A stretch of DNA of 64,000 nucleotides. Source: Mizuhopecten yessoensis. Taxonomy: Eukaryota. A program made the position numbers and the translations under genes. The number at the start of each line of letters is the position of its first letter. Position 1 is the first letter of the stretch. The stretch is taken from positions 415,446 to 479,445 of the forward strand of contig NW_018405529.1 of assembly GCF_002113885.1 (NCBI RefSeq), in the 5' to 3' direction. Positions 1,400-61,454 of this stretch are shown here, one piece after another. Below the pieces are notes generated by a model. The model saw only the letters and a list, made by a program, of their open reading frames with translations, was not told the origin of the DNA and searched no databases.

Positions 1400-2255
1400 A
1401 ATTTCAAAGTATTTTATTGACAATACATATATAATACAAACATATAAGTTAACATTAAAGGAGATATTTGAACAGTATTGACAAAAGAATAAGACAACAG
1501 GCTTTGCCTATATCAGTCTTCTTCTAATTCCGGTAGATATGTACAATGCTTAAATATATAAAATGTTGTGATTCGTTTCCTCTCACACTCATGCACACCC
1601 ACACCCACACCAGCTTATGTCTAATACTCGTTATTTAAGGGATAAAACTTGCCTGAATAACAATAATTATAACAATACATGAATATTCATTTGGAAATTT
1701 ATCTAGCACGTATAAGTAACGAAACGTTTTGATGATTTAATATAAGAGTCAACATGTATAAGAATAGTTTTATTTAATTGGTTGGATGCATTACTAATAC
1801 CATATACTAAACAGTGCAGATTTAAATATCCTACTAGATTATAAATAGTGGTAATATGATGCCTAATATTAGAATACAGAGGACATTGAAAGAAAAAATG
1901 TATTAGATCTTCCCTCTGTACACCACATACACAGGAAGCATCATCAATCAGATGGTCTTGTAACTTATCACAGTTAAGATCACTTTTAAAATTTCTTAGC
2001 TGACATAAAATTATGTTAAGTTTCCTCGGAACACAGTTAATAAAAGTTTCTGAGACGGATGTATCAAAGGTTTTTTTAAGTTTCTTTTTAAAAGATGAAA
2101 TTGAGATGGAGTCTCGTACAGTGCTATCAAGTGCATTCCATTTTACCATTGTAGAAGGGAAGAAGCTATTCATATAAGTAGTAGTTCTTGTCTGTGGTAT
2201 ATTAAAGAATCTGTTATTTCTGAAGGTATAGTTATTATCTTCCATGTCAGTGAAT
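1400..2255 (-). mobile_element. 5'-truncated non-LTR retrotransposon (CR1/L2-group), ORF2 C-terminus plus 3' UTR
   Basis: ORF 1703-2245 has NSFFPSTMVKWNAL...SFKKKLK and the CxCG...EDLIHFFFQCPLY zinc-knuckle-like tail typical of LINE ORF2 ends. An AATAAA lies near 1415 on the minus strand. Confidence 0.85.
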
Positions 2256-13200: not shown

Positions 13201-16200
13201 CCAAAATGTGATTTCCCTATATAAACTAAAGTAAAGTTTACCCCCTTCACAGGGGTAAACGTGAGACCCCAGGGACATGAAATTCACAATTTTGGTAAAG
13301 CACCTTAAGACCCTTCCATCTATGAAAAGTATTTGATTCTACCATATCTGTGTCTTGAGAAGAAGATTTTGAAATTTTAGTCAATTTTACCCTTTTTGGC
13401 CCTGCCGCTCAGGCCCCTGGGGGCTGGGGACCAAACCGGCCACTACTTTTGTTGACCTTTTGCCATGAAAGGTTTCTGCAAAATTTCATTGAAATTGGTT
13501 CAGGGGTTTTGGAGAAGAAGTCGAAAACGTAAATTGTTTACGGACGCACGACGGACGACGCCGGACAAAAGGCGATCGCAATAGGTCACTCGAGACTTTG
13601 TCCCAGGTGACCTAAAAAGCTAGACCGTACAGACAGCGTCAATGCTTGACTTGACAGTCTTCACATGTGCTTTCCCGAATCAGAGTCACGAAAACAAACA
13701 CTCCTCCAACCTTAATTTGAGTTGCTAAAACGCTCAAACCCAGTGCGGGAATTTCACCACCACAATACTCGTAGAATGCACCAGAGATAAATGTTTTGTT
13801 TGGTGAAGGGTATCTGAAGCTTTAAGTAACCCCCTGGTGAGTGTCAGAGATTCTACTTTCTATTTACGATAACGAAACTATATAGCGGAAGCATGCAAGA
13901 CTGAATTATGCGCACGCACCCCGAACGGAAGTGGGTCCGTCATTTCGTCTCTTGACAGAATCAATAAGCCGCTCAACTCTCGCCAAGAGTGGCTTAAAAA
14001 AATGATAATGCCATAGATTAGTATTGCATTAATGTAAATCAATTTAATAAATGCTGAAATGATGTCAAATAAATTATCTATAAACGATTAAAAATTGACA
14101 TTTTATAATAAAACCATATATACACAAAGTAGTTGCAGGTAAGAGTTATCTTTCTTGAAAAACTTCACAGTAGTGAAATAGGTAGCCGGTTTCCTGAAGT
14201 ACAGAACAAGAGATCCCAGAGGGATCTTGGCGCCCACCATTGTGCCATCTTCATTAGTTCTATGTCAGTTGTTCTTTTCTCTTCTTTCCGCTAATCTGTT
14301 TGATCGAGTCATGTTAACAGTAAATGCACCATGAGGTAACTTTTGATCTAAACTTAATACTGATGTGTATGAAAACCAACCTTCAAAGTGAGTTTTGTCA
14401 TTTCACATATTTACTAGTACAGTACTGAAAGAAATAGAATCGATCATTACAATATGAGAAAGATCTTTTTAGTTCTTCCTTTAGCCATTTAGTTTTTATG
14501 ATCAGTCTCAAAATATAACATGCATAACGAGGGATCAAGGGGAACCTACATATCAAATTTGAGAAAGATCCCTCAAGTTATTCCTGTGAAATAGTACTAA
14601 CAAACCTTCAATGTAAAAAATCCAAGATGGCTGTCGGTAGGCCATTTTGTTTAACTGATCAGTTTCAAAAGTAAACATGAACAAATAAAAGGATAGTGGG
14701 GAACCTGCATTGGCTGGCCCCAAAAATATTTTTTGGGCGAGTAAAAAATTTGAAGCACTGGCCCAAATGACATATTGGTGGCTCAAATAATTTTGGGAAG
14801 AAATATTTCCACAGCATTTAACATAATGTTTCGGCACATTTAAACTACATATACATGTAACATGACAATGTTTGTAATATGTAAAACAGATTAAAACATT
14901 ATATTTTAAATTCTTCAACCCTAATTAAAACCTGACATGTTTCCAAAAGAAATACACAAAATGTGTTCCCCAAAGAAGACACCCTGGTCGTATTTATATA
15001 GAAAATCTGAAGAAAAAAAATATCATCACATTTTTTAAATCTTGGACAGTTCGATTCAAATTGAAGTAATGACAACTGAAAAATATACTGCCCCCAGTTA
15101 ATGTGGAAGGGACTATAATTTCTTTTATTCATAAATTTTTGACAGTCGCCCAAACTATTTGTGACTACCTCACTTTTGACAACTTTTGGTCGCCCAAGCA
15201 AGAATTTAATCGCCATTGGCGAGCAGGCGACCATCCATTTCAGGCACTGCTGCACAACAAGGGAACAAGGGAAACCTACATATAAAATTTAAGAAAGATC
15301 CCTCTGGTACATTTGTACTTTCGGAGAAATGGCGGTAACAAATCTTCACTATCAAAATCCAAGATAGCTGCCTTTCGACCATGTTGTTTATCCGATCAGT
15401 CTCAAAAGTTGCCCTGCACAGTAAGGGACCGAGGGGAATCTACATACAAAATAAGAGAAAGATCCCTCTGGTACTTCCCGAGAAATAGTGATAACAAACT
15501 TTCACTATCAAAATCCAAGATGGCTGCCTGTTGGCCATGTTGTTTATTCGATCAGTCTCAAAAGTTGCCCTACACAGCTTAGGACCAAGGGGAACCTACA
15601 TAAAAAAATTAAGAAAGATCCCTCTGGTACTTCTTGAGAAATACCGATAACAAGAATTGTTTACGGACAGATGATGGACGACAGACCACGGACGGACCAC
15701 GGACGCAGGGTGATTTAAGTAGCCCACCATGGTGGGCTAAAAATGGACACATGTGGCTCATTGATAAAAACAAGAGGCCCAATGGGCCTGCATTGCTCAC
15801 CTGGTATTAATCTCACACTTGTAATCTTCACTTGTAATCTTAAAAGTGGACTAAAATACAGCTACAGGCAGAATATCAGTGTTTGATTCATAAGAACCTA
15901 TTAAAAGATTTAAACATATGACGCATGTGACCTTGAATGTCGAACAAGGACATTAGGTTGAACAGAGTTTATAGTCTTCCAACCCAGCATGCTTCTGGCA
16001 AAATTTCATTACCCTGGATCTTTTGGTTATACAGAACAAATCATTTAAGGATTTAAACATATATTGACCACTGTGACCTTGAATATGGGCAAAGGTCATT
16101 CACTTTGTAGTCCTTCATCCTAGCATGTTAATGGCCAAATATCATCACCCTTGGCCTGCTTATTAAGACGTCTAAAGAAGTTTAAAGGTTTTTAACATAT

Positions 16201-19034
16201 TTGACCCATGTGACCTTGAATATATGTCAAGGTCGTTCATTTGAACAAACTTGGTAGTCCTTCATCCCAGAATGTTACTGGCATTATCCTAGGCCTCTTG
16301 GTTATTCAAAAGAAGTTCTTTTAAAGGTTTTTTAACATATTCAACCCTTGTGACCTTGAATATAAGTCAAGGTCATTTGAACAAACTTGGTAGCCCTTCA
16401 TCCAAGCATGTTACTGGCAAAATATCATCACCTTATACCTCTTGGTTATTCAGAGGTTATTAAAAGGTTTTTTCATTTGGACAAACTCGGTAGTCCTTTA
16501 TTCCAGCATGCTACTGGCCAAATATCATCATCATCCTAGGCATTTTGGTTATTGAGAAGAAGTTGTATTACAGGTTTTTAACATATTTGACCCCTGTGAC
16601 CTTGAATATAAGTCAAGTTCATTCATTTGAACAAACTTGTGGTCCGTCATCCTAGCATGCAACAGACCCAATTTCAGTACCCTGAGCCTTTTGGTTATTG
16701 AGAAGTCGTTTTTAAGATTTTACGACATTTGAACCCTGTGACCTTTAANCTTCATCCCAGCATGCTACAGGCCCAATATCAGTACCCTGGGCCTTTTGGT
16801 TATTGAGGAGAAGTTGTTTAAAGATTTTAACATATTTGACCCCTGTTACCTTGAAAGTGGGTCAAGGTCATTCATTTGAACAAACTTGGTAGTCTTTCAT
16901 CCAAGCATGCTACAGGCCCAATATCAGTACCCTGGGCCTTTTGGTTATTGAGAAGAAGTTGTTTGAAGATTTTAAAACATTTGACCCCTGTGACCTTGAA
17001 AGTTGGTCAAGGTCATTCATTTGAACAAACTTGGTAACCCTTTATACCAGCATGCTACAGGCCCAATATCAGTTCCCTGGGCCTTTCGGTTATTGAGAAG
17101 AAGTTGTTTAAAGTAAAATATTGGCGCCGGCACCGCACCACTGCATTATAACTGAATTAATGCCTGGATTGCTTTGAAATACTTTATTATTGAGAGAACA
17201 CACTGTTCTGTCAATAATAAACATACAATAATCACCATTATAAGATCATGGACAAAACCTAAACATAAATATAATGACTCATTACACAGTTATTACGGTA
17301 CAATGTATTTCTGTATTCTAATATTCTGCCAAGAATGACAACTCTTTGGTAATATATTTATTAACAATGTTTTCTACTTACTTTTCCTGTATTTTTGGCA
17401 CTTTGTAACACAAAAAGGTCTGAGAATATGCGGAAATTGTGATACTGTCTCCCTACATTGCATTTTCAACTAGGGATGTACTTCCTATTTCCGTTTATCA
17501 ATACACTCATTCGACCTTAACATCTGGGCCAACGAGAGTGATCAATATAAGTTGTAATAACTTGTTTCATAATTGTTGTAAAATATTTTACATTCAGAAA
17601 CCAAGTATTTTTTGTTTACCTTTTCTGCAGTGAGAACAATCATTACTTATTTATGTGTTGTGTGGTCATAAAGCACTTACATAAATTTTGTTTACCTGTT
17701 TTAAAGACAGAAAACTGATTTTGTCATTAATCTACCTGTTCTGTTGACAGTTTTATGGTTATCTTGTTCCATCCGCAGAAAGCCTCTCATAAATCCTTTA
17801 CCTGATCCATATTAAAATATATCATTAACTCATGTATTATTTACCTGCTCTGACCACTTCTTTCCATATCTAATGAAGGCCGCAAAATGTTCACAGTTAT
17901 TCCACAGAACATTGTAGCCTATCTCTCCGACCATCTCCATGGCTACCCGCACCATCTCGTGTGGTTGACGAGGCCTGAAAACAGAACAGCCTACCAGTAT
18001 ATATACTATACAAACTGACATTGTTTATGTAGGAACAGAGGTATGTAAAAACTTAAGTGAGAAGACTAAATACATCAACAGCTAAGGTTTCAATACTACA
18101 TATTTCCTATCTACATATATACATACGAGCATTTCCTGTCCTTTCCATTATTTATTTTCGCTTTACATTTGAGGGCAATTTTCCAGAAGTCATCAATCAT
18201 CACCCAGGCTTTGCTGAAATTCTTTCCACAGATAGTAAATACACTCCCAGAGTTGATGTTCCCATTAATACCATCATTGTCCCCTCCAGACAGGTGCACA
18301 ATCCTTCCTTCACCTTACCAGAAAAATAAGGAGGAAAACAACAACAAATCAATAAACATTATCTTCATAGTGTTTCAACAATTGTAAAACAGTTAAATAT
18401 AGTTTTGTTCCAGTACAGTAGCACTACAAAGTAAAGTATTCATTATATTGCAACAGCATGTTTTAATCTACCACTGATATGTTTGAGCTTAATTTGCAAT
18501 CAAATCTTCTTGACGTGGACATGGATAAACATGATGCCCAGCCATGGCAACTTTTTGTGCCTTTCTCTTTCAAAATATTCATCTCGTATCTAGAAAACTG
18601 TATTTTTGCCCTTTAAAAAATCATTGCAGTTTCTGATCAAGGAAAATTCCCAAAGATTACGATGTGACAAGATGGAATATGTTAGCCCAAAGCATTGTTA
18701 CATTACATCATAACTAAAAGTCTGACCAATGAAGTTGTGTCCAGGGTGTCACTTACTGGTTGGTAACAAAAATATTTACCAACTCCAAGCAGGATTACCT
18801 ATAGAGTTGATAGTGAGGAAGAGAACAGGTTCTGGAATATGTCACAATGTTACATTGATCCACATTTACATTGTTCTATCAGATACTATTCAGCCCCCAT
18901 TCACAGTATCACCTACCTAAATAGACACCCCAATGGGAGTACCAGCCTCTTGGGAACTCCACCATGTCTCCAATCTTAAGGTCATTGAGGACTGTAGCAT
19001 TATGGGATTGTACTGACATAGAGTTTCCAGCCAT
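10202..19034 (-). CDS. PLAAT/HRASLS-family (LRAT-like, NlpC/P60) phospholipase A/acyltransferase, ~181 aa, 4 coding exons
   Basis: Exons 19034-18917, 18313-18127, 17974-17845 and 10312-10202 have GT-AG junctions with matching phases 1, 2, 0. Protein: MAGNSMSVQSHNATVLNDLKIGDMVEFPRGWYSHWGVYLGEGRIVHLSG...YNVLWNNCEHFAAFIRYGKKWSEQADTALAWTVAAASTVAVSGLLYNFFKGPEDNKEAKK*. It has the GD, HWGVY, VH and NCEHF motifs and a C-terminal hydrophobic segment. Confidence 0.92.
11312..11450 (+). mobile_element. V-SINE-like fragment
   Basis: A tRNA-like head (ggtggcacggtagatatcacactcgcctttcacc) is followed by gtgggttttctcaagtactccggtttcctcccac, the V-domain motif. Confidence 0.6.
12567..13618 (+). mobile_element. 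Complete Helentron-associated (HINE/pearl-like) element
   Basis: Head aacaagaggcccatgggcc...ggtcacctg, internal tandem repeats (~304-bp period), a GGAC-type microsatellite at ~13540-13567 and a 3' hairpin taggtcac...caggtgacctaaaaa. Confidence 0.8.
14205..15743 (+). mobile_element. HINE/pearl-like element with a nested hAT-like fragment (~14710-15249)
   Basis: Head aacaagagatcccagagggatcttggcgcccacc, ~160-bp units (gaaagatccctc), a GGAC microsatellite and the 3' palindrome tagcccaccatggtgggctaaaaa. The repeat array is interrupted by an unrelated block ending ...catttcaggcactg. Confidence 0.75.
15769..17150 (+). mobile_element. HINE/pearl-like element with a ~145-bp satellite array
   Basis: Head aacaagaggcccaatgggcc...ctcacctg and about 8 units of ttgacccctgtgaccttgaa...caaggtcattcatttgaacaaacttgg. 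There is one N at 16749. Confidence 0.8.
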
Positions 19035-19137
19035 ATTGCATTAACTTCTGAAATGAAAAATAACAAAACAATAAAAATTGAAAAATAATAATAACAAATA
19101 GTTGAATTAGGTTTAAGATTGAAAGGACAACAGAAAA

Positions 19138-19345
19138 ACAAGAGATCCAAAGGGATGTTGGCACCTACAATTGTACAACCTTTATTACTCAATCTAAGAC
19201 TGATCTTTCGTCTTATTTTCTCTTATCTGTTAGATTGAGAATCATGTCAACAGTAAATACATCAAGTGATAACTTTAGATCAAAATTTTATACTGCTGTT
19301 TTTGCCATTGTCCTTTCAAAGTGAGATTGTCCTTTCACATATTGA
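19138..19345 (+). mobile_element. Diverged 5' part of the 14205-family HINE
   Basis: aacaagagatccaaagggatgttggcacctac...catgtcaacagtaaat aligns by eye with 14205-14410. Confidence 0.65.
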
Positions 19346-19729
19346 CAACTAGTGCATCAAACAGGAGTACAAAAGACATTCCTGCTTTCTTGCATCCTTC
19401 TTTTTCTTTCTATGAAGTACAAAATGAAATGTGCAAAACAAGAGAGCAGGAAGAACCTATTTAAGGAAGAACATTTCTAAGAAACAGGGCCAACAAACAT
19501 CAATGGTTAAATTCAAGATATTGAACAGGGCCGTCCTTTTTTCTCAATCAAGGTAAATAAGAAACATGCACAAAAAAAGCCTAGTTGGGAACTTTGTAAA
19601 AATCTACCACCTGGCAACAATCTTGTTCTCGCACGCAGTTTCAAATCTGAACATGCAAAACTAAGGACCAATGAACATCTTCTTGTGATATTTGAGAATG
19701 ATTCCTTTGGACTGGGTCAATCGTCAGCG

Positions 19730-20464: not shown

Positions 20465-21015
20465 ATAAGATAAGATCAGATAAGATTTTTTTTATCTAAA
20501 GTCGGCGAATATTTGACCGACATGCATGTTACATAAATAAACATTCATACTTATACAAGATAGGCAATACAAATACTATATTTGATAAAACACATCAGAC
20601 TTCAAGTTATTTTCAATAAGGACAGATTTGACACATTGCAGTTAGACAAAATATCTAGAATATTTTAAAACACATCAGATTTCATATAAAGTCAATAAAT
20701 TAGCACTGATCCAATAAAATACATGTAAAATTGACACAGGAGAGGTGTGTAGAAGTGAAGGGGCTGGGGTTGAGGTTTAATTTGCAGGCTGAACATTTGC
20801 ATTGTGTACCGTTCCGGGAGGATATTAAAGATTTGAAGTGAGTGAAGTTATTTGTTGTCCTAAATGTGCTGAGTAGATTGCTCCAAAGGCAGGCTGCTGT
20901 GTATCTGAAGGATGTCATGCTGTATGTAGTGGTTCTAACTTGTGGAATGTTAATATGTTGGTTAGTAGTGTATCTGAAACTGTCTGTAGTTTTGGGTTTT
21001 AGGTGTGACAATGTT
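20465..21015 (-). mobile_element. 3' end of a CR1/L2-group LINE with a short-repeat tail
   Basis: ORF 20700-21011 has IPQVRTTTY...SFRYTAACLWSNL...FKSLI...CKCSAC. The minus-strand 3' end finishes in an (ATCTT)n-like tail at ~20466-20486. Confidence 0.8.
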
Positions 21016-25559: not shown

Positions 25560-27683
25560 TCATTCCTTATTTTTATCAAGATGGCTGTCACTCAGATCCT
25601 TTATTGGTTTTCCAAGATAGTCGATCAGCTGTTTAAATATGTCTTGTCTTGTCGTTAAGGATATGAAACATTTGAGTCGTAAATACGCCCTGATTTCACT
25701 CATTCCTACGTCATCTGTGCCTACATTGTCCATGTTTATTATTTCGATAGCTTTGTTACTCTTCCAGGCTATCTTAAACTCCATTCGCATCCAAACTGAC
25801 TCTGTTTTACTGTAGGTTTCTGATAAAATACATAAAAATGTTCTCGATTGTTGTACAGCAACTTTGATCTCTTCTTCCCAAAGATTTCCAACCGACATAT
25901 CCCTACCGGGTACAAAAGTTGTGAAATTCGAACTATGTAATATTCTAAGTAGATAGTCCATAACAAATCTTCGAGAATCATCATCATTTTCATCAAAAGA
26001 AACGAAAACGTCATATTTGCATGTACATCCATCATCTTTTACAATCTTTCTCCTAAATTTTCTCAGCAAAAGTTTGATTTCAAGATGAAATAGAGATCCG
26101 ACAGCTGCTGCCGTTAGTGATATTAATGCTAAACCCAGACATGTCGACAATATAATTGTTAAAACTGTATTTATGTGGGAGTTATCACAGTCCACTAAGA
26201 ATGGCCCAGCCAGTTCCACAAGCGTCTTACTGTCTCCGTTTCTAATGTTTTCACAGAACAACGGATTTAGAAAGTGTACAGTTCCTCTCTCACGCCACTC
26301 CCCTATCCAGGTATTGTTGCACGTACATTCTATTCCATTATCTCCTAAGAGTACATGGTTTGGATCTAAGAGCTGGAATGATTTCGGTAGATCTTTTAGG
26401 TTGTGCTTGTCCAAATCCAGTTTTGATAACGAGACAAGAGATTTCCCCACTTCGCTATCAATAGCGTTCACACCGTTGTCTGATAAATCCAGTATACGAA
26501 GTCTGTGCATATAGACTCTGTGTTCTAAACGTTGCACGTCATTATTTGCCATCAGAAGTTCTACTAAAAAGGCACTTTCCGGAAGTGCCATGGGCATTTG
26601 CTGCATCTCTGTAAACGAACAGTTCACGATGATCCGCCACTGTGTCGGTTGCTCAATACATGTACAAAATTTTGGACAATTAATACGAATATTACAAATC
26701 ATCCGGTCGTATGTCTCCGGATCGTTCATATCTAATGTTGAGTTACCTTGATTTGAACATGCGAGACCGCTCATAGTTGGAATCATGGTTATAACTTTCC
26801 AATTAGATTCCAGGTATAGTGCTACGTTACAGTCGCAAGTTAGAGTAACATTTTGCAAATCATATACACCTGTTGGTACCATTAATGGTATGTACTGTAT
26901 CAGATGAGGATCCTTTTTTAAAAGAAAGGAGAACATATCCTCTTCCATGGAACAACCTGTGAACGAAATATCTCCAGAATTGTAGCGCTTATCCGAGTCA
27001 ATCGTGATGTTATTGGTGTTGGTAAAATGCCCATTTAGAGCATTTTCAAAATTCATTTTGCAGAAAAGATGATTTTCTCTCATGACATTTGTAATATCAA
27101 TAGTTTCAAAAACGTTATTTGAAAAGTCAACGTAGAATATATTCGTCATATTTCCGGTAAACGCATTAGCGTCCAAATTTTTCATGCTATTGTTTGATAA
27201 ATCTAGCACGCGTAAATCGGGCATTTCCATGAACGTCATATTTGAGATGCGCTTAATTTTATTCCCAGCCAAAATCAATGTATCCAATTGCTTAAGGCAG
27301 TGAATTTCATCAATCGTTTCGATAAGATTGTCGGTGAAATCGATCTTCACAAGATTTTTGAAATCACAAATGTTTCTGGGGAGGGAGCGCAACCGTTGAC
27401 CGGTGTAAATGGCTTGGTAACGCTTATAGGTGCTGTTGGTTGGATAATAGATCAATTCAGCTGATGCTTTACCTAAACTGGTGTATTCTACATATACATT
27501 TCCCAGCGACTCCAGTCCTAGCTCCCATGTTGGTCTGGAAAAACAGCTACAACACCTGTCATCGGTACAATTCTTGTTACAAAGTAAGTCTTTTGGTGGT
27601 CCAATATCCGGCGTCCAATCTTCGTATGGGAAACAAACCACCATCGGAATAAAAAACAACAGAACTCTCCTAGTTAAATACAT
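25560..27683 (-). CDS. Toll-like receptor, multi-cysteine-cluster (protostome) type, single coding exon, ~707 aa
   Basis: The ORF has a signal-like N-terminus at M56 (MYLTRRVLLFFIPMVVCF), LRRs (LDTLILAGNKI, LRVLDLSNNSM), an internal LRRCT/LRRNT pair (TCDC...CPKFCTC), more LRRs, an LRRCT (ECTCNNTW), a transmembrane helix and a TIR domain (YDVFVSF, RD..G, SR...ILS, W...EF). Confidence 0.95.
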   Translation of the reverse strand: MYLTRRVLLFFIPMVVCFPYEDWTPDIGPPKDLLCNKNCTDDRCCSCFSRPTWELGLESLGNVYVEYTSLGKASAELIYYPTNSTYKRYQAIYTGQRLRSLPRNICDFKNLVKIDFTDNLIETIDEIHCLKQLDTLILAGNKIKRISNMTFMEMPDLRVLDLSNNSMKNLDANAFTGNMTNIFYVDFSNNVFETIDITNVMRENHLFCKMNFENALNGHFTNTNNITIDSDKRYNSGDISFTGCSMEEDMFSFLLKKDPHLIQYIPLMVPTGVYDLQNVTLTCDCNVALYLESNWKVITMIPTMSGLACSNQGNSTLDMNDPETYDRMICNIRINCPKFCTCIEQPTQWRIIVNCSFTEMQQMPMALPESAFLVELLMANNDVQRLEHRVYMHRLRILDLSDNGVNAIDSEVGKSLVSLSKLDLDKHNLKDLPKSFQLLDPNHVLLGDNGIECTCNNTWIGEWRERGTVHFLNPLFCENIRNGDSKTLVELAGPFLVDCDNSHINTVLTIILSTCLGLALISLTAAAVGSLFHLEIKLLLRKFRRKIVKDDGCTCKYDVFVSFDENDDDSRRFVMDYLLRILHSSNFTTFVPGRDMSVGNLWEEEIKVAVQQSRTFLCILSETYSKTESVWMRMEFKIAWKSNKAIEIINMDNVGTDDVGMSEIRAYLRLKCFISLTTRQDIFKQLIDYLGKPIKDLSDSHLDKNKE

Positions 27684-27889
27684 ATTTACACTACACGTTA
27701 TATCGGAATGAAATTGTTCTCGACTGATGCAACGCTCAACGAATGAATGGTCAGTGTCCGACCGACTTACCAGTAGGGAACCCAGGTACTTATCACAGAA
27801 AGGAGAACATTGAAGGGGATACTTGATTCGGTGAAGAACACGTCCCATAAATCCAAATGTGTCAATATAACGTGATTTACATCCTAGTA

Positions 27890-28259: not shown

Positions 28260-29770
28260 ATCTATTAAAAGTGAAGTAGTAGAACTTGTACTATGTATAA
28301 AGACCTTTATCTCTACAACTGTATTATGTCACAGACTGACGGCATTACACATATTGGTATTTTATTAAACTCTAAACAGAACTCTTTTGAGAGAACAACA
28401 CGTGGATGTAATAAGTAAAGATCGGGTACGATGTCCGTTATTCGTTCCGGTGCACATCCTTGTGCTCTCAAACCCTTAACAGTGGCGAAGTTTATCAAAA
28501 TTAAAGCTTATCCATCCGCCTTATACGGGTGCGAGCTTTGGCAATTGACAAAAATCGAAATAATAATGTTAGAAAGAGCACAACATGTTATTGTTAAATC
28601 TATTCAAGGGTTTGAAAAAAGAACCAGAACTGACATGTGTACATCCTTATTTGGTTGGACCTCTATTGCGGCATATATAGACATTAGAACATTATTATTC
28701 TTGTGAAGATTGTGTAAAAGGAAACCAATGTCTCTTGTTTCTAAAGATTTTATTACCAGACATCTTTTTGTTTCGGCTACGTAGACCAGAACGGATTCAT
28801 CCCCGACATAGTCAATATTAAAAAAGTATTCGTTGCATCAAAATCTAGGAAAGTTTGTTGAAACTGGAATCTTTCGAAAGAACGTATGAAAGTTGAGAAT
28901 GATTTTACATGTTTTCGAGAACTACATAACCAACTCAAACCTGATACTTTATGGAAGCTAGCGCTTCGATTTCCTCAATACAGAGAATATATACAATATA
29001 TAATGACAATAGTTGTAACCATCCGTAGCCTGATTACCATGGAATTATGTCATAAATGTGGGGTTTTATATCAAGCCCCAATGACACATCTAGTGCTACA
29101 GTGTACTTATACGTCCGAGTTGAGGGACCAACTATGGTGCTGTATAATTAATATCAAGGATATACTGTTTAGTGTCTATTTACACTCTCTCCCAGATCTT
29201 GAGATATTACACGTAATGATTGGAGGAAATATAAACTACAAAATTAGTGAAGAAGAGTTGAATGATACTGGATAAAATCCATCATTTATGTGTACAAGAT
29301 GTGTAAACTATATTATACTTAATGTATATAACAGTTATGATTAAAAGTTAAATACATACATATCTGATGTAGAATTTTGTATAAGTTGCATTTAGCAAAA
29401 TATATCACATGAGATACTATATGAACTATACTACATATTAAGATGCATGGGAGTATACATGTGTGGGCCCGTAACACCTCGCAGGTGGGGATATCCCCCA
29501 CCCTTGTGTGATCCAGACCCACAAATGTATCCTCCGCGTTTATAGTTTGTATAATACAATAAATGTCTTTATTGCATGTATTTACAAATACAACGATACA
29601 TTGAAAATATTCTATTAATTTAAACTGTATATACACATCCCTATATATAAAGTGTATATTTATGTAATGCATATTATGTAATCGTGTATATATGTACCAA
29701 ATACTTTGTATATATGTTCCACATTACTTTGTAATCTTCATCTTTGGAGGCAATAAAGAAAAAATAATAC
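28260..29770 (+). mobile_element. Decayed 5'-truncated non-LTR retrotransposon (post-RT C-terminal region and 3' UTR)
   Basis: Broken ORFs 28431-28706 (PSALYGCELW...LERAQ...KSIQG) and 28886-29275 (CHKC...THLVLQC). The sequence gcaataaagaaaaa lies at ~29750. Confidence 0.8.
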
Positions 29771-50682: not shown

Positions 50683-53600
50683 TTACAGTTCCCTATAATA
50701 CACCAAATAGGAGTACATGATGATGATTCCAGGGCTGTGTTTGGGGTTGGGGTCTGTCCCATTGTACCATCCAAAATAAGACAAAGAGTTATCTGTCCCT
50801 GGTGACGCGAGCTGGTCTGTGACATCAATCACCCATGGCAACACGTTCTGTCCATCACACCAGCCATTTCGGCCATAAAGCCAGGTACCATGCTCGTTTG
50901 GCTCCACTCCATACGGCACTCGATCTGCACATCCAAGAGGAGTACCTACATACACAAATACAACAAAGGGGATATTTATATATATAAACATGCATCAATA
51001 GAAAGTGTCTAAACACTAAAACACATGTCAACAGAGGGGTTCTCTAAACACATAACTATGTGTCAACAGGGGATATCATAAACATATGTCAACAGGGGAT
51101 ATCTTTAAACACATAAACATGTGTCAACAGGGGATATCTATAAACATATAATCATGTGTCAACAGGGGATATCTTTAAGCACATAAACATGTGTCAACAT
51201 GGGATATCTATAAACACATAAACATGTGTCAACAGGAGATATCTTAACACATAAACATGTGTCAACAGGGGATATTTATAAACACATAAACATGTGTCAA
51301 CAGGGGATATCTTAAAACACATAAACATGTGTCAACAGGGGATATCTATAAACACATAAACATGTGTCAACAGGGGATATCTTAAAACACATAAACATGT
51401 GTCAACAGGGGATATCTATAAACACATAAACATGTGTCAACAGGGGATATCTTAAAACACATAAACATGTGTCAACAGGGGATATCTATAAACACATAAA
51501 CATGTGTCAACAGGGGATATCTATAAACACATAAACATGTGTCAACAGGGGATATCTCTAAACACATAAACATGTGTCAACAGGGGATATCTATAAACAC
51601 ATAAACATGTGTCAACAGGGGATATCTTAAAACACATAAACATGTGTCAACAGGGGATATCTATAAACACACAAACATGTGTTAACAGGGGATATCTATA
51701 AACACATAAACATGTGTCAACAGGTGATATCTATAAACACATAAACATGTGTCAACAGGGGATATCTATAAACACACAAACATGTGTTAACAGGGAATAT
51801 CTATAAACACATAAACATGTGTCAACATGGGATATCTATAAACACGTAAACATGTGTCAACAGGGGATATCTTACACAGAAACATGTGTCAACAGGGGAT
51901 ATCTTACACAGAAACATGTGTCAACAGGGGATATCTTGAAACACATAAACATGTGTTAACAGGGGATATCTTTAAACACATAAACATGTGTTAACAGGGG
52001 ATATCTTTAAACACATAAACATGTGTTAACAGGGGATATCTTTAAACACATAAGCATGTGTCAACATGGGATATCTATAAACACGTAAACATGTGTCAAC
52101 AGGGGATATCTTACACAGAAACATGTGTCAACAGGGGATATCTGACACATAAACATGTGTCAACAGGGGATTTCTATAAACACATAAACATGTGTCAACA
52201 TGGGATATCTATAAACACGTAAACATGTGTCAACAGGGGATATCTTACACAGAAACATGTGTCAACAGGGGATATCTTACACAGAAACATGTGTCAACAG
52301 GGGATATCTGACACATAAACATGTGTCAACAGGGGATATCTTACACAGAAACATGTGTCAACAGGGGATATCTTTAAACACATAAACATGTGTTAACAGG
52401 GGATATCTTTAAACACATAAACATGTGTCAACATGGGATATCTATAAACACATAAACATGTGTCAACAGGGGATATCTTACACATAAACATGTGTCAACA
52501 GGGGATATCTATAAACACATAAACATGTGTCAACAGGGGAAATCTATAAACACATAAACATGTGTCAACAGGGGATATCTTTAAACACATAAACATGTGT
52601 CAACATGAGATATCTATAAACACATTAACATGTGTCAGCATGGGATATCTATTAACACATAAACATGTGTCAACAAGGGATATCTATAACACATAAACAT
52701 GTGGCAACAGATGTGATATCAAAACACATAAACATGTGTCAACAGGGGATATCTATAAACATGTGTCAACAGGGGATATCTTTAAACACATAAACATGTG
52801 TCAACATGAGATATCTATAAACACATTAACATGTGTCAGCATGGGATATCTATTAACACATAAACATGTGTCAACAAGGGATATCTATAACACATAAACA
52901 TGTGGCAACAGATGTGATATCAAAACACATAAACATGTGTCAACAGGGGATATCTATAAACATGTGTCAACAGGGGATATCTTTAAACACATAAACATGT
53001 GTCAACATGAGATATCTATAAACACATTAACATGTGTCAGCATGGGATATCTATTAACACATAAACATGTGTCAACAAGGGATATCTATAACACATAAAC
53101 ATGTGACAACAGATGTGATATCAAAACACATAAACATGTGGCAACAGGGGATATCTATAAACCCATAAACATGTGTCAAAGGGGATATCTTAACCCATAA
53201 ACATGTGTCAACAGGGGATAGCTTTACACATAAACATGTGAAAACAGGGGATATCTATAAACACATAAACATGTGTCAACAGGGGATATCTATAAACACA
53301 TAAGCATGTGTCAACAGGAGGAATCTATACACATATAAACATATGTCAACCGAGGATATTTTCACACATAATACGTTTCAACATGGAATTTTAATACACA
53401 CATAAGCATATGCCAACAGATGGGAAATCAATACATACATAAACATGTGTAAACAGGGGGTATCTATACACACGTAAGCATGTATCAACAGACAATATCT
53501 TCACATACAAACATGTGTCAATAGGGGGAATTATTTCATATAAACATGTGTCAACAGATGGGATATCTTAATGCATAAACATGTGTCAACAGATGGGATA

Positions 53601-56600
53601 TCTTTACACATAAACATGTGTCAACAGGGGATATCTTTACACATAAACATGTGTCAACAGATGGGATATCTTTACACATAAACATGTGTCAATAGGGGAT
53701 ATCTTTACACATAAACATGTGTCAACAGATGGGATATCTTAATGCATAAACGTGTGTCAACAGGGGATATCTTTACACATAAACATGAGTCAACAGGGGA
53801 TATCTTTACACATAAACATGCGTCAACAGGGGATATCTTTACACATAAACATGAGTCAACAGGGGATATCTTTACACATAAACATGTGTCAATAGGGGAT
53901 ATCTTTACACATAAACATGTGTCAATAGGGGATATCTTTACACATAAACATGTGTCAACAGATGGGATATCTTTACACATAAACATGTGTCAACAGGGGA
54001 TATCTTTACACATAAACATGTGTCAACAGGGGATATCTTAACATATAAATAAGAGTCAACAATAAGGGGTACATACATGTACATAAACAGATATCAATAG
54101 AAAGGGGGAGCTGTTTCATTTAGATAAAGTGTGCTATACTTTTTTAATTCTATGTCAACTAGTTATATGTACCATTAATTCACTGTTAAACACTTTCAGA
54201 ATTAGCCAAATCAACACACAAAAACTGTAAGACATATAACAACATTACCCGCATTACTAAAAGTTATATTGTTTATGTGGCTGTTGACTTTAAAATGATG
54301 AGAGGTCACACAAAATTCTCCACATCCATTTTCATCACTGCCATGTCCAGTGATTACAGCAAATATCTCCACCTTAAAACACAACAAAACACAATATGTA
54401 GAAACTATATATATCTAGGATAAACTGACATAGATGTCACATTTATACTGCAATTACCTATTTTAAATTCCTGAGAATAGTTCAGAAAATGCACTTACTA
54501 GAAATTTAAATCTTCAAAAGATGAATTATGTCTTGGAAATGTTATTGTTCATTAATTCAAATCAACAATTATTTCATGTTAATAATGGATAATAGAGCAC
54601 TGACTCATAACTTGTAATTATTTGTTACACAGAAAGGCAACACTGTGTAAATAAGGAGCTATATTTATCCTGCAATAAGCCAAGGGGGCCAACACATAAA
54701 CTCTGACTCAAAGTAGGGGGTGGGCTTATTACAGGGCAATGAATAACCTCTGACTCAAAGTAGGGGGTGGGTTTATTACAGGGCAATGAATAAACTCTGA
54801 CTCAAAGTAGGGGGTGGGCTTGTTATAGGGCAATGAATCAACTCTGACTCAAAGTAGGGGGTGGGCTTATTACAGGGCAATGAATTAACTGACTCAAAGT
54901 AGGGGGTAGGCTTATTACAGGGCAATGAATTAACTCTGACTCAAAGTAGGGGGTGGGCTTATTACAGGGCAATAAATAAACTCTGACTCAAAGTAGGGGG
55001 TGGGCTTATTATGGGGAAATGAATAAACCATTTGTTTGCATTTCTTCTAAACTGCTATAGATATGGGTGGGCTTATTACCAGTCATGGGCTTATTGTTGC
55101 ATAAATTAGGTAACACAATAGCTAATCACTACAGGACCAACACTGTTAGGAAAAACTTACTTGTCATATTACACCTGTTCTCCAAGGAATCAGTAGTGTC
55201 TAACCTAGCTAAATGTTTGGTTTATACAGATTGCTGCATTATACAGTGATTGATAAGGACAGGTTATGATGTTATCGTGTGGAGTAGAAAAAGTTCTATA
55301 TAAAGACATGTAAGCATGTAACTGTATATGGATTAGTTAGTGTCTTATAAAGAGAGGATACTGTGTATTTTACCTTTTTAATATCATCTGGTACTGTAAA
55401 CATGTATGGCTTGAAATGCGAGTTGTAAGTTTTATCAAAGGTGGCTCCAGGTTCATACAGCACTGTGACCTTCTCAGGATACAGTTCACCTACAAATAAC
55501 AAATATATATATATGTACCTCTGAAACAATGTTAAAGAAATAAAAATTCCAATAATATTTAGGACTGTTTATATATGGCCTGATGAAGGAAAGTGAATCT
55601 CTTGCTAATTTACATGACATTTTTCACCATTCACTTCATTTGCACTGGCTCACTTCCATTCATCAAGCCATGCAAGTGACAAAATACTCATTTTCTTCCT
55701 GTAAAATCTGATCTTTCAGTAACTATATGATTCACAATAATCAATAGATTACTTGTAGATTACTAATGTTCCAGCCTTCTTATAATGTTGTGTATTTGTA
55801 ACTTGTGCATTCTTCCTGACAAACGTTCAGCCTTATGACCATATAAATATCTACAAAATTTCTACATAACCAATTTGGACATTCAAATGCTTCACTGTCA
55901 GTATATGTATTAAATCCCATTAAACATGTAAGGTATAAATTCCCTTAAGTTGTAAGTATAAAATCCTATTAAACATGTAAGGTGTAAATTCCATTAAGAT
56001 GTAAGTATTAAATCCCATTAAACATATAAGGTATACATTCCATTAAGATGTAAATATTAAATCCCATTAAACATGTAAGGTATAAATTCCCTTAAGTTGT
56101 AAGTATAAAATCCTATTAAACATGTAAGGTGTAAATTCCATTAAGATGTAAGTATTAAATCCCATTAAACATGTAAGTTGTAAATTTCATTAAGATGTAA
56201 GTATTAAATCCCATTAAACATGTAAAGTGTAAATTTCATTAAGATGTAAAACCTTTTACATCATACCTGATGCCCGAGGTTGAGAAAATCTTAAATTTAA
56301 TGATGGCTTCCAAGGCATTGCCCACGGCTCTGTCTTCATGTTAAACACACAAGTAGAGCTTGTGAGGAGGGGAAGAAGTGGGGACACATCTGTCATCCAA
56401 CGGCCAATCCTCCTGTGGAGCAAACAGTTGCAACATCCAGAGAGTGTCATTCCAAAAACCACAAAACAAAATCAGGAGTGTAGTTAATACAGTAATAGAT
56501 TACACTGTATATTCACACAAGTCACAAACAAAGAGTACATAGCTTCTTGTCTGAAAACCAAATTTGTTTTTTTCTTATCAACTGATTATGAGACATTTGA

Positions 56601-59600
56601 CCTACTAACTTTTAAAAGCTATATTAAGCATTAAGTATGGCATGATCGTACTAAGATAACGATGTTAATCAAAAACCAAATCATGACAATATGTCCCCCA
56701 ACCACCAACACAGAGAAAACATAGTTTTGATAGTGTTGTACCGTCTGAAGGCACTTATCCAGCGTCCCAGCTCCATACCGCAGAGCGGTGACCCTGGGTC
56801 ACAGCAAACATACAGGTTGATGGTGTGATCCCAGTGAGGACAGTCTGTATCCATGGTACCTGGACATGAGAGGGACATGTCCAACTCCATCTTGGAAAAC
56901 TTTTGCAAATCTGTACAGAAAAATATCTGGAATAAGGCAGGTGCTGCTCAATGTCAAAAATTCTTGTTTAATGACAAAAATATTCTGAAACCAAATAATT
57001 CATCGAAATTACCTTCATTATATTTAGTCACAAATTTGATTCATCTGAATATTTTCTGGAAAACAATAAGTCCAAAATAGTGAAACAATCCATCTACACT
57101 AATGAAACAATTAAACACAAAGGCCAAATTTTAACATTACAATAATTAATATACATCCAGGCAGAATCCAATGCAGAAAGTTTGTATTCATCATGAATCA
57201 TTTACCTGTTAAATCCGGCAATGTGATGTTAGCGACAACACCGTCTTTCCCTTGCATTACCCGCTCTGTGAAGATTTCGACTGAGGTAGCCGGTGTGTGT
57301 AATCTTTTGTCCAGCTTATCTCTGTACTCAAACCTACAACACACTTCTTTAGTCAAATATACAATCCATACTCTATTCAATCATACAATGCTCAAGTCAG
57401 TTAAAGTGTCCTCAAATGCAAGTGACTAAATGGTCAGATGGTTTTACTATTTTATGTATATTCCTCAATGAACATATCTTCATTTCCAAGGGGAAGAAAT
57501 CGTGTTTTAAAGTCATGTGTAAAATTGTGATTTTATGAGAAATTACTGTATACGCTCTGACTATGACGGTTCCCATGAGATAAGAGAACTGTAAGTATAA
57601 TTTCAAACTCCTAGTAGCAGGATGTATCACCATACAAATAGATATTCAGCTAAAATTAGATTAAATCAAGACCTGAAAGCAAACATAAATAGATGAGTCA
57701 TAATTTATAATACCGTAAAACCCCATGTAATTTGCGCACTATTTTTCAGAAATTTAATACCTAAAGTGGTGGGTGCGTAAAATACACAGGTATAGAAAAT
57801 TTCAAGTTTTTTTCAGGAAAAGATCAACGATTCTGAGAGATCGCCATCTTGGATTATTTCCCTTGGTACACGGAACTCTAAGACAAATGACGATCAACAA
57901 ATTTATTTATGTCCAACGTTAATAAAAGATACATAATGTGTTGTTATGTGAGTTTATGTGAAAAGTATTATTAAATAGGTAACCGTTAACAAAAAAAGTT
58001 TGGCCAAATTCCTATATGAAACAATTAAGGACAGGTAAGTTTCAAGTGGAAAGTTTTGCCAGAAGGATGTACTGTATATATTAGCCCGAGTGTCACATGT
58101 TTCCATCCTGTTACTATATACTTACCACTGAGCCTGCCACACCAGAAAGTCCATCGATGGATACAGGAACCAGCCCACTTCCGCCAGTGACCCTGCCTGG
58201 TTTATCGCCAGGAAAAAATTCTCAGATGGAGTATTTTGGAAACTGATGTTAAGCTTCTCAGTTCTATGGAAAAAGATACAAGCAATTTGTTACCTCAAAT
58301 ATATCTGAACAATGAAAATAAATGATGGTGACTAAAATTTACTTGAACCAATGACAGGTCAAAAAGAGCCAACAGTGTGCCTGACTGTACCCCCAATGTT
58401 CAATATTTTTAGTAACAGTGACGTTAACTTTGACTTTTAAAACTTTAAAACACTTATTACACATCTTCATATAACAGAGTATCACCACATCAAATTTCAA
58501 ACAGAATAGTCTTTTGGATTCTGAGAAAATCTCTGGAAACGACAGTGTGGACATACAGACAAGATGGACACCATGCCTACCTACTTTATATACTACGGTA
58601 TAGATATACTCCAATATTATCTGGTATAAGCATACAGTACTACAGTAGGGGATGTTACACACCTCTCCAGTATATATACTGGAGAGGTGTGTAACATCCC
58701 CTACTGTAGTACCGTATGCTTATACCAGACAATGGTGGAGTATAACAGTGTATATACTGGAGAGTCGTGTAACATCCCCTACTGTAGTACCGTGTGCTTA
58801 TACCAGACAATGGTGGAGTATAACAGTGTATATACTGGAGAGTCGTGTAACATCCCCTACTGTAGTACCGTGTGCTTATACCAGACAATGGTGGAGTATA
58901 ACAGTGTATATACGGGAGAGGTGTGTAACATCCCCTACTGTAGTACTGTATGCTTATACCAGATAATATTGGAGTATATCTATACCTACTTTATATACTA
59001 CGGTATAGATATACTCCAATATTATCTGGTATAAGCATACAGTACTACAGTAGGGGATGTTACACACCTCTCCAGTATATATAATGTTATACTCCACCAT
59101 TGTCTGGTATAAGCATAAGGTGCTACAGTAGGGGATGTTACACACCTACCCAGTATATACACTGTTATACTCCACCATTGTAGCTGGTATAGACAATGGG
59201 GTATTACACTGACCACCATTGCAGGACAACTCCTGTATACTTTCAGTTTTATTAGCAAACACAACAACGCCAATGGCCCCTGATCTCTGCATTGTTTGAA
59301 CCTAAAATAAAAGGGAAAATACAGTTAATTATCTCATCATTTTACATAATATTTTTCAAAAGGTGAGGAAATCGCAAATGATCAATATTCTTATATTTTT
59401 TCTTAGTTAAATAACAAGAGACAAACTATGACTGTACATATTTTTCAAGAGGATAGGGTTGGGATAATGTATATCACCTTCCCCCACCCCCTTCTAAATT
59501 TTGAAATTCTTCCTTAAATAATACTACTAAGGCACCCCATACACATGGTTGCTTAAAAAAAGAAAAAACACTGAATATATATTTACCTTTTGGAAAAAGG

Positions 59601-61454
59601 AACATTTTCCCGAAGCAACAAGAGCTATGGATCCATTGACAGCCTCCACACTGTTACAGCCAGTCTCAGCTCTAACCAATGACACTGTCTTGTTTCCAAA
59701 CACACTCTGTGGACTTGGCAACCAGTCATATCTGGCATCCAATCTCTTACTGACAACAGGAAATGGTGATGCTTTAACAGAAAGAGAAGCTTCTTTGAAT
59801 AAACATACATAATTAAATTGGCTCATTTACATGTAAGACTGCATGGACATTAATTCCACTGATGTTTTCATTATGCTTCTTCAAACAGGACTCAGAATTA
59901 CATTGTAGAACATTTTATTTTAATAAGATTGGAAATTCACAAATCTCAGGAATGTTCCTCCTGTTCATCCAATACATCATGTGTTCTTTTTAAATAAAAT
60001 AGTCATTGTAAAACATCATATTTATAAACAAAAAGCCAATCTGTCAGTCAAACACCTGTTTATACAGTGGTAGTTAGTTCACTTTAGTTATTACCGTCAG
60101 ATCGGACGACAACCTGGTCGTAGCCACAAAGATGGTCAACACAATGCCACTGGCTCAATGCGTCTGGGATCCAATTGCCAAGTTTGTCTAGTGGAACAAC
60201 AGAAAAATGGATCCTCTTCATCACAACTGAGACGTCTGTACTACTCCTGTAGAAACAAGCGATTGCAATGAAGGTACATATTATGAGTGTAAAGTACAAT
60301 TTTTTCACAAAAGTTGACCATAAAATTAAATCTCAAGAATTCTAATAACTGTTCATTCACTGTCATTCAGAGTGTAAGGATACATATTTGTATTTTGTGG
60401 AAGCAACATAACACAATGAAAAATAGACCACTTTCAGCAATTGTCTTATCATATACCTCTGTATACATGTATGTACATCTACACACTGAGGGGTAAAATT
60501 AGAGAAAAACTTTATAATAATGCTAAGCTAACAATATTTCCAAGTTCCAAATATCAAAATCATTGATCTGAGAAAATTAACTTTTCATTAAGTACATGGT
60601 ATAAGACAATTACAAAATTATTTAGTCACAAAATGAAAACCCATTGGATTACAGAGGCCTTTTTTCATAGTTTAAATATTTTTTTTATTTCCCCAGCATA
60701 TTTTTGGAGGGATATCAGGGTTGAAATGAGGGATTAAACCTAGACATATCTACATGAGTTGATCAAATCCATGTCTACAACATATATAGAAAAACAAATG
60801 GTCAGTAGCTGCCTCTACACATTTATAGACAACTTACATACTGGCCTCTCTTGTCATTGTTTGGAGGATACGGTCCCTCATCCACATGGCCCCATAAACA
60901 TCATGTATCCCAGCTGATTTGGGGATAAAAACAAAATGTATCGAGTTCAAAGCTGTGAAATTGACTATGGGCTTCAATCCTTCGTCCGATGTCCACATAC
61001 ATTCAAGAAAACCCGACTGTGGATCGAATACGTGAACAATCATTGAAGAATTTGCAAATGTTTGACTAGGATAAACAACCTTTCCATAGAGTCCCCAGAT
61101 GATAAAAGGCGACGCTGGGGTGCCTGGTTTATAATCAATGATTTCTCCGTCATTCAATGTTCTTGTCTTCGACCCTAAATGCTTAGAGTTGGCTTTATAA
61201 AAAGCTAAGTTTGCCTTTCCAACTGTTGCCGACCACGTACTTATCGGATGCGCTGTTGCCAGTGTTGGAGGAAATTTACCCACACATTTGCTTGATTTCG
61301 CCTGCTTCACTGACACTCCAAACGTATCAAATATTCTTACGTTCGTGTGTTTATGCTTCACATGCATGGTATATGCTTTCGGAATGATAGTAGAAACAAC
61401 AGCAATGTGCACAAACAGTATCGAAAACAGTAGCGGGATGTTTACGTCTACCAT
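50683..61454 (-). CDS. Secretory PNGase F-like peptide:N-glycanase with a PA domain, 11 exons, 736 aa
   Basis: Exons 61454-60838, 60246-60095, 59792-59587, 59301-59150, 58263-58126, 57333-57206, 56910-56742, 56412-56267, 55489-55374, 54372-54249 and 50945-50683 are all GT-AG with consistent phases and total 2211 nt. Features: signal peptide; PA motif GC...GSIALVASGKCSFFQKVQTMQRSGAIGVVV; PNGase F-type motifs CPHWDH, ELGRWIS, ITGHG...GCGEFC and GTWLYGRNGWCDG. Confidence 0.9.
50990..54065. repeat. ~33-bp minisatellite (~90 copies) filling intron 10 of the PNGase F-like gene
   Basis: acacataaacatgtgtcaacaggggatatctataa units with length variants and a ~185-bp higher-order triplication at ~52560-53130. 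Confidence 0.97.
54698..55028. repeat. 47-bp tandem repeat x7
   Basis: ctctgactcaaagtagggggtgggcttattacagggcaatgaataaa. Confidence 0.95.
55905..56250. repeat. 49-bp tandem repeat x7
   Basis: taaacatgtaaggt(a/g)taaattcc(c/a)ttaag(t/a)tgtaagtat(a/t)aaatcc(t/c)at units. Confidence 0.92.
58577..59190. repeat. 78-bp repeat cluster with internal inversion, derived from the exon 4/intron 4 junction
   Basis: The unit taccagacaatggtggagtataacagtgtatatactggagag...tgctta lies on + at 58723, 58801 and 58879, and on - at ~58610-58675 and ~59015-59190. A palindrome is centred on ccagtatatatactgg (~58675). Confidence 0.93.

Follow-up and report, generated by a model that had tools for sequence, protein, structure and literature searches.

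The window analysed here, 64,000 nucleotides of contig NW_018405529.1 from the Yesso scallop, Mizuhopecten yessoensis, carries the ngly2 locus. This consists of 11 minus-strand exons, all with GT..AG ends, which encode a protein of 729 aa. The joined exons, checked for stops, read through without a break: translation starts with an ATG at 61454 and terminates at 50683, and an AATAAA lies 107 bases past the stop. The features are:

Exon 1, 60838..61454, minus strand: aa 1-206; opens with a hydrophobic signal or anchor (aa 6-24), followed by an extension of low confidence (~aa 25-105) and the start of the thioredoxin-like domain.
N-terminal hydrophobic segment, 61383..61454, minus strand: aa 1-24; probable signal peptide, predicted from hydropathy; model helix 9-22.
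Exon 2, 60095..60246, minus strand: aa 206-257; this part of the thioredoxin-like domain ends and the PA region starts.
Exon 3, 59587..59771, minus strand: aa 257-318; PA domain; acceptor 59771 by RNA.
Exon 4, 59150..59301, minus strand: aa 319-369; PA domain; final ~45 bases and donor duplicated in intron 4.
Copies of a 78-base unit, 58578..59191, tandem and inverted: each unit joins the end of exon 4 to the beginning of intron 4; the repeats are predicted to form a long hairpin that covers the donor.
Exon 5, 58126..58263, minus strand: aa 369-415; returning strands of the thioredoxin-like domain; linker helix begins.
Exon 6, 57206..57333, minus strand: aa 415-458; linker helix; PNGase domain begins.
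Exon 7, 56742..56910, minus strand: aa 458-514; W484, D485 and H486 (codons 56833-56825); E504.
Exon 8, 56267..56412, minus strand: aa 514-563; E542 (codon 56330-56328) and W544.
Exon 9, 55374..55489, minus strand: aa 563-601; C-terminal jelly roll begins.
Exon 10, 54249..54372, minus strand: aa 602-643; H611 (54345-54343) and E620 (54318-54316).
Exon 11, 50683..50945, minus strand: aa 643-729 and stop; R668 (50871-50869).

All 11 exons and their junction residues are 100% identical to RefSeq XP_021351177.1 (LOC110448965, 729 aa), labelled "uncharacterized"; neither identifier was found by name in our literature search. RefSeq thus already models the gene with the same exons, one of several points on which the stronger framing of the first-pass annotation was overstated. 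A GenBank entry, OWF51596.1 (777 aa), is a different prediction for the same locus. The exons of the window were searched singly and were joined only for counting stops and length and for motif numbering; full-length alignment, fold comparison, tree and Pfam were run on the public database protein, which was returned by a search with a Capitella protein.

RNA supports eight of the ten exon joints. Those between exons 1-2, 2-3, 3-4, 5-6, 6-7, 7-8 and 8-9 are seen directly, and joint 9-10 appears as loose ends bearing exon-10 letters; joint 10-11 falls beyond the stretch to which RNA could be mapped. Spliced RNA was present in four runs from four studies, with low read depth and coded tissues. 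The exon-3 acceptor at 59771 is used by 12 raw reads (two runs), by one contig and likewise by the RefSeq model; use of 59792 was not seen among the RNA joints. The protein is therefore 729 aa long and not 736, the length first annotated, which needs acceptor 59792. The 11 in-frame exons of that annotation are otherwise borne out by their GT..AG ends, single open frame, RNA joints and RefSeq identity, and the spliced transcripts it anticipated exist. A pseudogene was rejected as an explanation: there is no stop or frameshift, spliced RNA is present and none of the RNA alleles touch functional residues. The gene is real, intact and expressed.

The joint between exons 4 and 5 is absent from the RNA joint table; duplication of the exon-4 end within intron 4 is the probable cause. 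A transcript contig extends to 59152, which rules out upstream in-frame exon-4 donors; those at 59171, 59195, 59210, 59228 and 59231 were discarded, since homology also runs through the exon end. The position and phase of intron 4 match those of Pecten and zebrafish. The inverted repeats in intron 4 might instead fold over the exon-4 donor, disturb splicing and weaken the allele in the assembly. Both the predicted hairpin (-486 kcal/mol, z -31), which pairs this donor, and the missing joint would fit such an effect, but it is very improbable: the exons before and after are covered to a similar depth (in one run, 52.7 and 46.7), a skip from exon 3 to exon 5 does not occur among the RNA joints, the same contig reaches 59152 and the repeat copies make mapping of the joint ambiguous. 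Co-transcriptional splicing may also outpace hairpin folding, and the RNA was taken from other individuals, in which intron 4 might not be the same.

The exon-by-exon search matched Pfam PA, N-glycanase_N and N-glycanase_C, in agreement with the PA and PNGase F N- and C-terminal domains proposed at first reading. The domain order is thioredoxin-like, PA, linker helix and PNGase (PF09112, PF09113). Residues 6-24 form a hydrophobic stretch (KD19 2.46), as the first reading had it; hydropathy does not tell a cleaved signal from an anchor. In the AlphaFold model (pLDDT 89), thioredoxin folds match aa 108-417 (4NMU, Z 11.3), the PA domain spans 247-404 and the PNGase domain 428-729. The region before the PA domain, first described as uncharacterised, is the thioredoxin-like dimer domain of Ngly2. 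No CxxC occurs in any exon, hence none in this domain; the protein contains nine sequons. The model superposes on zebrafish Ngly2 (9LWG) with Z 48.6 and 1.9 A over 607 residues, and on PNGase F with Z 28 and 2.2 A over 277 residues, so that the expected PNGase F fold was recovered. The hallmarks of the PNGase F superfamily are present, namely two eight-stranded jelly rolls and equivalents of W59-D60, E206 and R248.

Several lines of evidence make orthology of the scallop gene to zebrafish ngly2 virtually certain. Eight of the exons were searched against the PDB, and for each of them 9LWG ranked first (E 1e-7 to 1e-29); weak matches of single exons to other entries, DARPin among them, were dismissed as noise. 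The full set of 11 exons is collinear with zebrafish Ngly2, with 46% identity over 624 aa. Every one of the ten introns has a zebrafish counterpart of the same phase; eight of them fall at the same residue of the alignment and the other two lie no more than three residues off. Six or seven intron positions are common to the sea anemone Nematostella. In a quick tree with SH-aLRT support only, the protein is nested in scallops, bivalves, molluscs and bilaterians, following the species tree; orthology rests on this tree and the introns, both examined for this one scallop locus. Sixteen bivalve Ngly2 orthologues were already listed (PMC12753239). The protein thus belongs to a known family rather than founding a new system, as the more guarded wording of the first-pass annotation had allowed on grounds now strengthened by exon matches, fold, introns and tree.

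That annotation also called the enzyme bacterial-type, which is apt for its PNGase F fold but not as a statement of recent origin. A recent gene transfer from bacteria into this lineage, bringing a new deglycosylation route, would draw on a catalytic fold first known from bacteria. It is refuted by the shared introns and by the tree, which tracks animal phylogeny, and homologues occur in sponge, choanoflagellate, ichthyosporean, amoebozoans and green alga; its probability is vanishingly small. A much older transfer, into early eukaryotes, may have occurred. We conclude that the gene is very probably the vertically inherited ngly2 of the Yesso scallop, encoding an Ngly2-type lysosomal acid PNGase.

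The active site is conserved. W484, D485 and H486 correspond to zebrafish W420, D421 and H422 and to PNGase F W59, D60 and R61; W544 corresponds to zebrafish W480 and PNGase F W120, E620 to zebrafish E555 and PNGase F E206, and R668 to PNGase F R248. H611 corresponds to zebrafish H546 and lies at the position of PNGase F W191. All six Ngly2 functional residues (W484, D485, H486, W544, H611, E620) are therefore kept, including the catalytic pair D485 and E620 (zebrafish Asp421 and Glu555). In zebrafish Ngly2, D421A and E555A abolish activity and W480A cripples it (PMC12753239). The four motifs quoted at first reading are present in the order given there, and its assignments of D60 and E206 stand; its E118, the glutamate of ELGRW (E504), was rejected because it aligns with PNGase F E77. 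The true E118 site is E542, placed by sequence-profile mapping with an ungapped T-x-x-W anchor in which W120 is W544. The protein departs from type I PNGase F enzymes (a single catalytic domain, R61, W191) in its two extra domains, H486 and H611.

The traits that characterise Ngly2 include glycan release with an optimum near pH 3.5, a dimeric form, a lysosomal location and ovary-enriched expression. By analogy, PNGase activity of the scallop protein is highly probable, an acid, lysosomal enzyme is probable and an egg-centred role is a tentative suggestion with somewhat less than an even chance. As in zebrafish Ngly2, the scallop protein would enter the ER and be glycosylated, would dimerise through its thioredoxin-like and PA domains and would work inside acidic lysosomal or yolk compartments, where hydrolysis of the Asn-GlcNAc amide by D485 and E620 would free the whole N-glycan and convert Asn to Asp. 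The PA domain is predicted to roof the cleft, so that only unfolded or already cut glycopeptides would fit; yolk or egg glycoproteins and lysosomal glycopeptides are likely substrates by analogy only. H486, an Arg in PNGase F, may favour an acid optimum. It is the only residue that argues for one, because the H611-type His is general in the PNGase F superfamily; PNGaseL has it as well, and its glycan release was higher at pH 7.5 than at pH 6.

A different view is that of a secreted neutral-pH enzyme which, like bacterial PNGase F, removes the N-glycans of food or of microbes within the gut, the mucus or the haemolymph. A signal peptide alone fits secretion and lysosomal targeting alike, E542 resembles PNGase F and several superfamily members with the H611-type His are active near neutral pH. 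We consider this unlikely, however, as H486 matches acid Ngly2, the oyster orthologue is weak at pH 7 and the zebrafish enzyme co-localises with Lamp1 (PMC12753239). PNGaseCg, the oyster protein and the only bivalve enzyme tried so far, was produced in E. coli; tested against whole glycoproteins at pH 7.0, it showed "not much activity" (PMC12381499). Zebrafish Ngly2 is also inactive on whole glycoproteins at pH 7.0, and these assay conditions may explain the weak oyster activity.

The lysosomal acid PNGase reading is compatible with a refinement in which gene and chemistry are the same and specificity is shifted: E542 would close the pocket beside the core GlcNAc, so that core alpha-1,3-fucosylated glycans are rejected, or the pH curve would differ. 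This is possible but doubtful. According to published work, E118 of PNGase F keeps out core alpha-1,3-fucose, and Gly at this site opens a pocket (PMC9522356; PMC13728245). Glu occupies the site in Mizuhopecten, Pecten and Argopecten, against Ala in oyster (Saccostrea), mussel and zebrafish; among 90 homologues it is V in 40, A in 24, D in 12 and E in 4. The scallop Ylistrum nevertheless has Val, and the site therefore drifts within one family; the placement of E118 at 542 comes from a sequence profile and not from residue-level superposition, and neighbouring loops also shape fucose tolerance. Val/Ala-type Ngly2 proteins may accept core alpha-1,3-fucosylated glycans; our literature search returned no assay of Ngly2 on alpha-1,3-fucose and nothing on core fucose in scallops. 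Still more speculatively, position 542 could be a specificity switch within Ngly2: scallops would have regained an E118-like acidic gate, most Ngly2 proteins (His with Val/Ala) would accept core alpha-1,3-fucose and the Arg-with-Asp type of cephalopods and amoebozoans would be nearer to neutral PNGase F. If so, the His-with-Glu enzyme of the scallop would offer a natural intermediate form in which to dissect the acid dependence of Ngly2.

Ngly2, characterised in zebrafish in 2025 as an acid-loving lysosomal enzyme that removes N-linked sugar chains (PMC12753239), is a family named only in that year, and we found no report of clear activity for an invertebrate member. The present work assigns a name to an "uncharacterized" scallop gene. 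The finding adds no new pathway, and specialists aware of the 2025 paper would expect this gene in a scallop; a positive assay would carry lysosomal whole-glycan removal to molluscs and might yield a reagent for mollusc glycans.

Two other enzymes catalyse the same net reaction: NGLY1, a cytosolic enzyme of the transglutaminase fold that has a Cys-His-Asp triad, and PNGase A (PF12222). The scallop protein has no match to the transglutaminase core, PUB or PAW of NGLY1 (Pfam and fold comparison) and no Pfam match to PF12222. With Elizabethkingia PNGase F (1PNF, 1PGS, 3PMS) it shares the double jelly-roll (19-20% identity) and counterparts of W59, D60, E118, W120, E206, R248 and W251, whereas R61 and W191 are both His in the scallop and PNGase F lacks thioredoxin-like and PA domains, has a neutral to alkaline optimum and takes cyclic peptides. 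Pacific oyster PNGaseCg is, like the scallop protein, a bivalve member of the PNGase F superfamily that has a linker helix and carries a PA module above its active site, a likeness drawn from its published description and not from sequence (PMC12381499). Compared with zebrafish Ngly2 (si:dkey-256h2.1, NP_001373269.1, PDB 9LWG; PMC12753239), the scallop protein has a longer N-terminal extension (the match starts at aa 104-109 in the scallop and at 51-56 in zebrafish). It carries Glu where zebrafish has Ala at the position of E118, and its gene is without the last zebrafish intron, but the two proteins have the same domain order and fold, both without CxxC, and 15 of 16 aligned cysteines in common.

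The candidate ngly2 gene (50683-61454, minus strand) is a real, intact and expressed orthologue of the gene for Ngly2, the lysosomal acid PNGase of zebrafish. Its 11 exons form a single open frame after splicing of the window sequence, all ten introns are GT..AG, and exon GC is 0.37-0.51 compared with 0.31-0.40 over most of the window. Several acceptor/donor combinations near exons 3 and 4 preserve an open frame, with products of 702-736 aa. Spliced transcripts exist: within the span of the RNA evidence (55365-61360), seven joints are seen directly (exons 1-2, 2-3, 3-4, 5-6, 6-7, 7-8 and 8-9; CT..AC on the plus strand), supported by up to four low-depth RNA runs (tissues coded) from four studies, and the exon 9-10 joint appears as loose read ends bearing exon-10 letters. 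The first-pass annotation was right about 11 exons spliced in frame but not about a 736-aa product. That model, the longest option (acceptor 59792), was dropped because the exon 2-3 joint places the exon-3 acceptor at 59771; the product is 729 aa. The exon 4-5 joint is absent from the joints listed over this span. A transcript contig extends 148 letters into exon 4, reaching 59152, and 59150 therefore remains as the exon-4 donor. At six positions (61285, 61108, 61088, 60949, 58245 and 57290) all listed RNA reads disagree with the assembly, giving C57F, P116H, Y123D, L169S, I to M in exon 5 and A to T in exon 6. Y123D brings back the zebrafish residue. These mismatches are either rare alleles or assembly base errors.

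A search with the Capitella homologue as query retrieved XP_021351177.1 (LOC110448965, Mizuhopecten yessoensis), a 729-aa protein that matches every one of the 11 exons at 100% identity and agrees at the junction residues. It carries the RefSeq label "uncharacterized", and our literature search found no paper naming LOC110448965. Scallop ngly2 is thus already modelled in RefSeq, and was foreseeable from the 2025 Ngly2 paper (PMC12753239), whose orthologue list includes Bivalvia (16 species, unnamed), cephalopods, chitons, annelids, echinoderms, cnidarians and sponges. In single-exon searches, Pfam returned the expected domains: PA in exons 3 and 4 (each weak alone), N-glycanase_N in exons 7 and 8, and N-glycanase_C in exons 10 and 11. 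In 8/8 exons searched the top PDB match was 9LWG, zebrafish si:dkey-256h2.1, named Ngly2 in PMC12753239. The cluster representatives include 632 relatives of exon 11.

An AlphaFold model of XP_021351177.1 (90-sequence alignment, mean pLDDT 89) matches 9LWG with Z 48.6 and 1.9 A over 607 residues, and recovers the proposed PNGase F fold (Z 28, aa 428-729). PA domain structures match at about aa 247-404. Thioredoxin folds match (Z 10.7-11.3) across a discontinuous stretch, about aa 102-417, and the N-terminal region of ~250 aa, previously called uncharacterised, is mostly this thioredoxin-like domain. In zebrafish Ngly2 the corresponding domain forms the dimer and is without CxxC (PMC12753239); likewise, none of the 11 scallop exons has a CxxC. 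The N-terminal extension has low model confidence and no match in zebrafish Ngly2 or the PDB. Features of the gene and its surroundings are as follows.

61383-61140, minus strand: N-terminal extension (aa 25-105), two predicted helices, pLDDT 42-68
58578-59191: several tandem and inverted copies of a 78-base unit
57707-58015: dispersed repeat of ~310 bases in intron 5, single copy in the window
51010-54061: 35-base satellite in intron 10, ~90 copies
25560-27848, minus strand: single-exon ORF of 762 aa for a Toll-like receptor (LRRs, hydrophobic segment, TIR domain)
1703-2245 (minus), 20700-21011 (minus), 28431-29275 (plus): ORF fragments resembling, by eye, LINE reverse transcriptase ends

Single-exon Toll-like receptor ORFs are common in bivalves. 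The 78-base unit joins ~45 bases from the end of exon 4 to ~35 from the start of intron 4, and has no copy elsewhere in the 64-kb window; the intron-4 copies look like a local fold-back duplication. Long hairpins pairing the exon-4 donor are predicted in the pre-mRNA (-486 kcal/mol, z -31). The RNA, which comes from other animals, gives no sign of splicing harm at intron 4, flanking depths being alike and no skip listed. The intron-5 repeat is probably a small transposon; RNA from many loci contains it in abundance (contig depth >1000, many loose ends). Pecten maximus also has a ~6-kb tandem array in the intron that holds the satellite (about 13350-19360 of its locus), the likeness being one of array and position.

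By alignment, zebrafish W420, D421, H422, W480, H546 and E555 correspond to scallop W484, D485, H486, W544, H611 and E620. Zebrafish Ngly2 loses all activity in the D421A and E555A mutants and keeps ~4% in W480A (PMC12753239). With PNGase F residues counted on chain 1PGS, D485 equals D60, E620 E206, R668 R248 and W544 W120, while R61 is replaced by H486 and W191 by H611. In the text of PMC12753239, W420 is the counterpart of W191, and H422 and H546 are those of W59 and R61; our alignment instead gives W59 = W420, R61 = H422 and W191 = H546. The D60 and E206 equivalents were correctly anticipated but that of E118 was not: the ELGRW glutamate (E504), rejected for this role, aligns with E77.

PNGase F E118 aligns ungapped with scallop position 542, also Glu. 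Among 90 homologues this position is V in 40, A in 24, D in 12, E in 4 and another residue in 10. Arg occupies position 486 in 12/12 Asp542 rows, and Val or Ala position 542 in 62/72 His486 rows; since the alignment rows are related to one another, this pairing is a lead rather than proof. Arg486 with Asp542, resembling PNGase F R61 and E118, occurs in cephalopods and amoebozoans, and His486 with Val or Ala542 in most other animals; the two combinations may mark neutral and acid sub-types. E118 is reported as a barrier to core alpha-1,3-fucose (PMC9522356; PMC13728245). The idea that Glu542 would similarly reject core alpha-1,3-fucosylated glycans is the sole part of this study with some new content. 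The scallop Ylistrum has Val542, and the position is therefore labile.

Beyond the demonstrated gene model, transcription, fold and conserved residues, scallop Ngly2 would, by analogy with zebrafish, enter the ER, form a dimer and be delivered to acidic compartments, where D485 and E620 would hydrolyse the Asn-GlcNAc amide beneath a PA-domain roof letting in extended peptides only. Its putative acid optimum would rest mostly on H486, since relatives active at neutral pH commonly have the H611-type His. The zebrafish enzyme produces the free glycans of eggs (PMC12753239). For the Pacific oyster protein, a PA module over the active site has been described, and material made in E. coli showed little activity on whole glycoproteins at pH 7.0 (PMC12381499). 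This would count little against activity, since zebrafish Ngly2 is likewise inactive above pH 6 (PMC12753239).

Identity to the scallop protein is 73-77% in other scallops, ~62% in mussel and oyster, and 46% over 624 aa in zebrafish. In a quick maximum-likelihood tree it nests within scallops (support 100), bivalves (97), molluscs (88) and, together with zebrafish Ngly2, bilaterians (95); cnidarians branch outside. All ten introns are present in Pecten, and all ten have an equal-phase counterpart in zebrafish; the position coincides in the alignment for eight of them and differs by no more than three residues for the other two. Of the seven introns found in Nematostella, six lie no more than one residue from a scallop intron, and one, though of equal phase, is 12 residues away. 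Together with the 9LWG match, these data bear out the suggestion of an invertebrate Ngly2 orthologue rather than a new family, and the tree and common introns place an intron-bearing gene already in the cnidarian and bilaterian ancestor. Homologues also occur in a sponge, the choanoflagellate Codosiga, the ichthyosporean Amoebidium, two amoebozoans and the green alga Chloropicon; the Ngly2-like family therefore predates animals. This range exceeds the animals and bacteria of PMC12753239, although algae do appear in PMC12381499.
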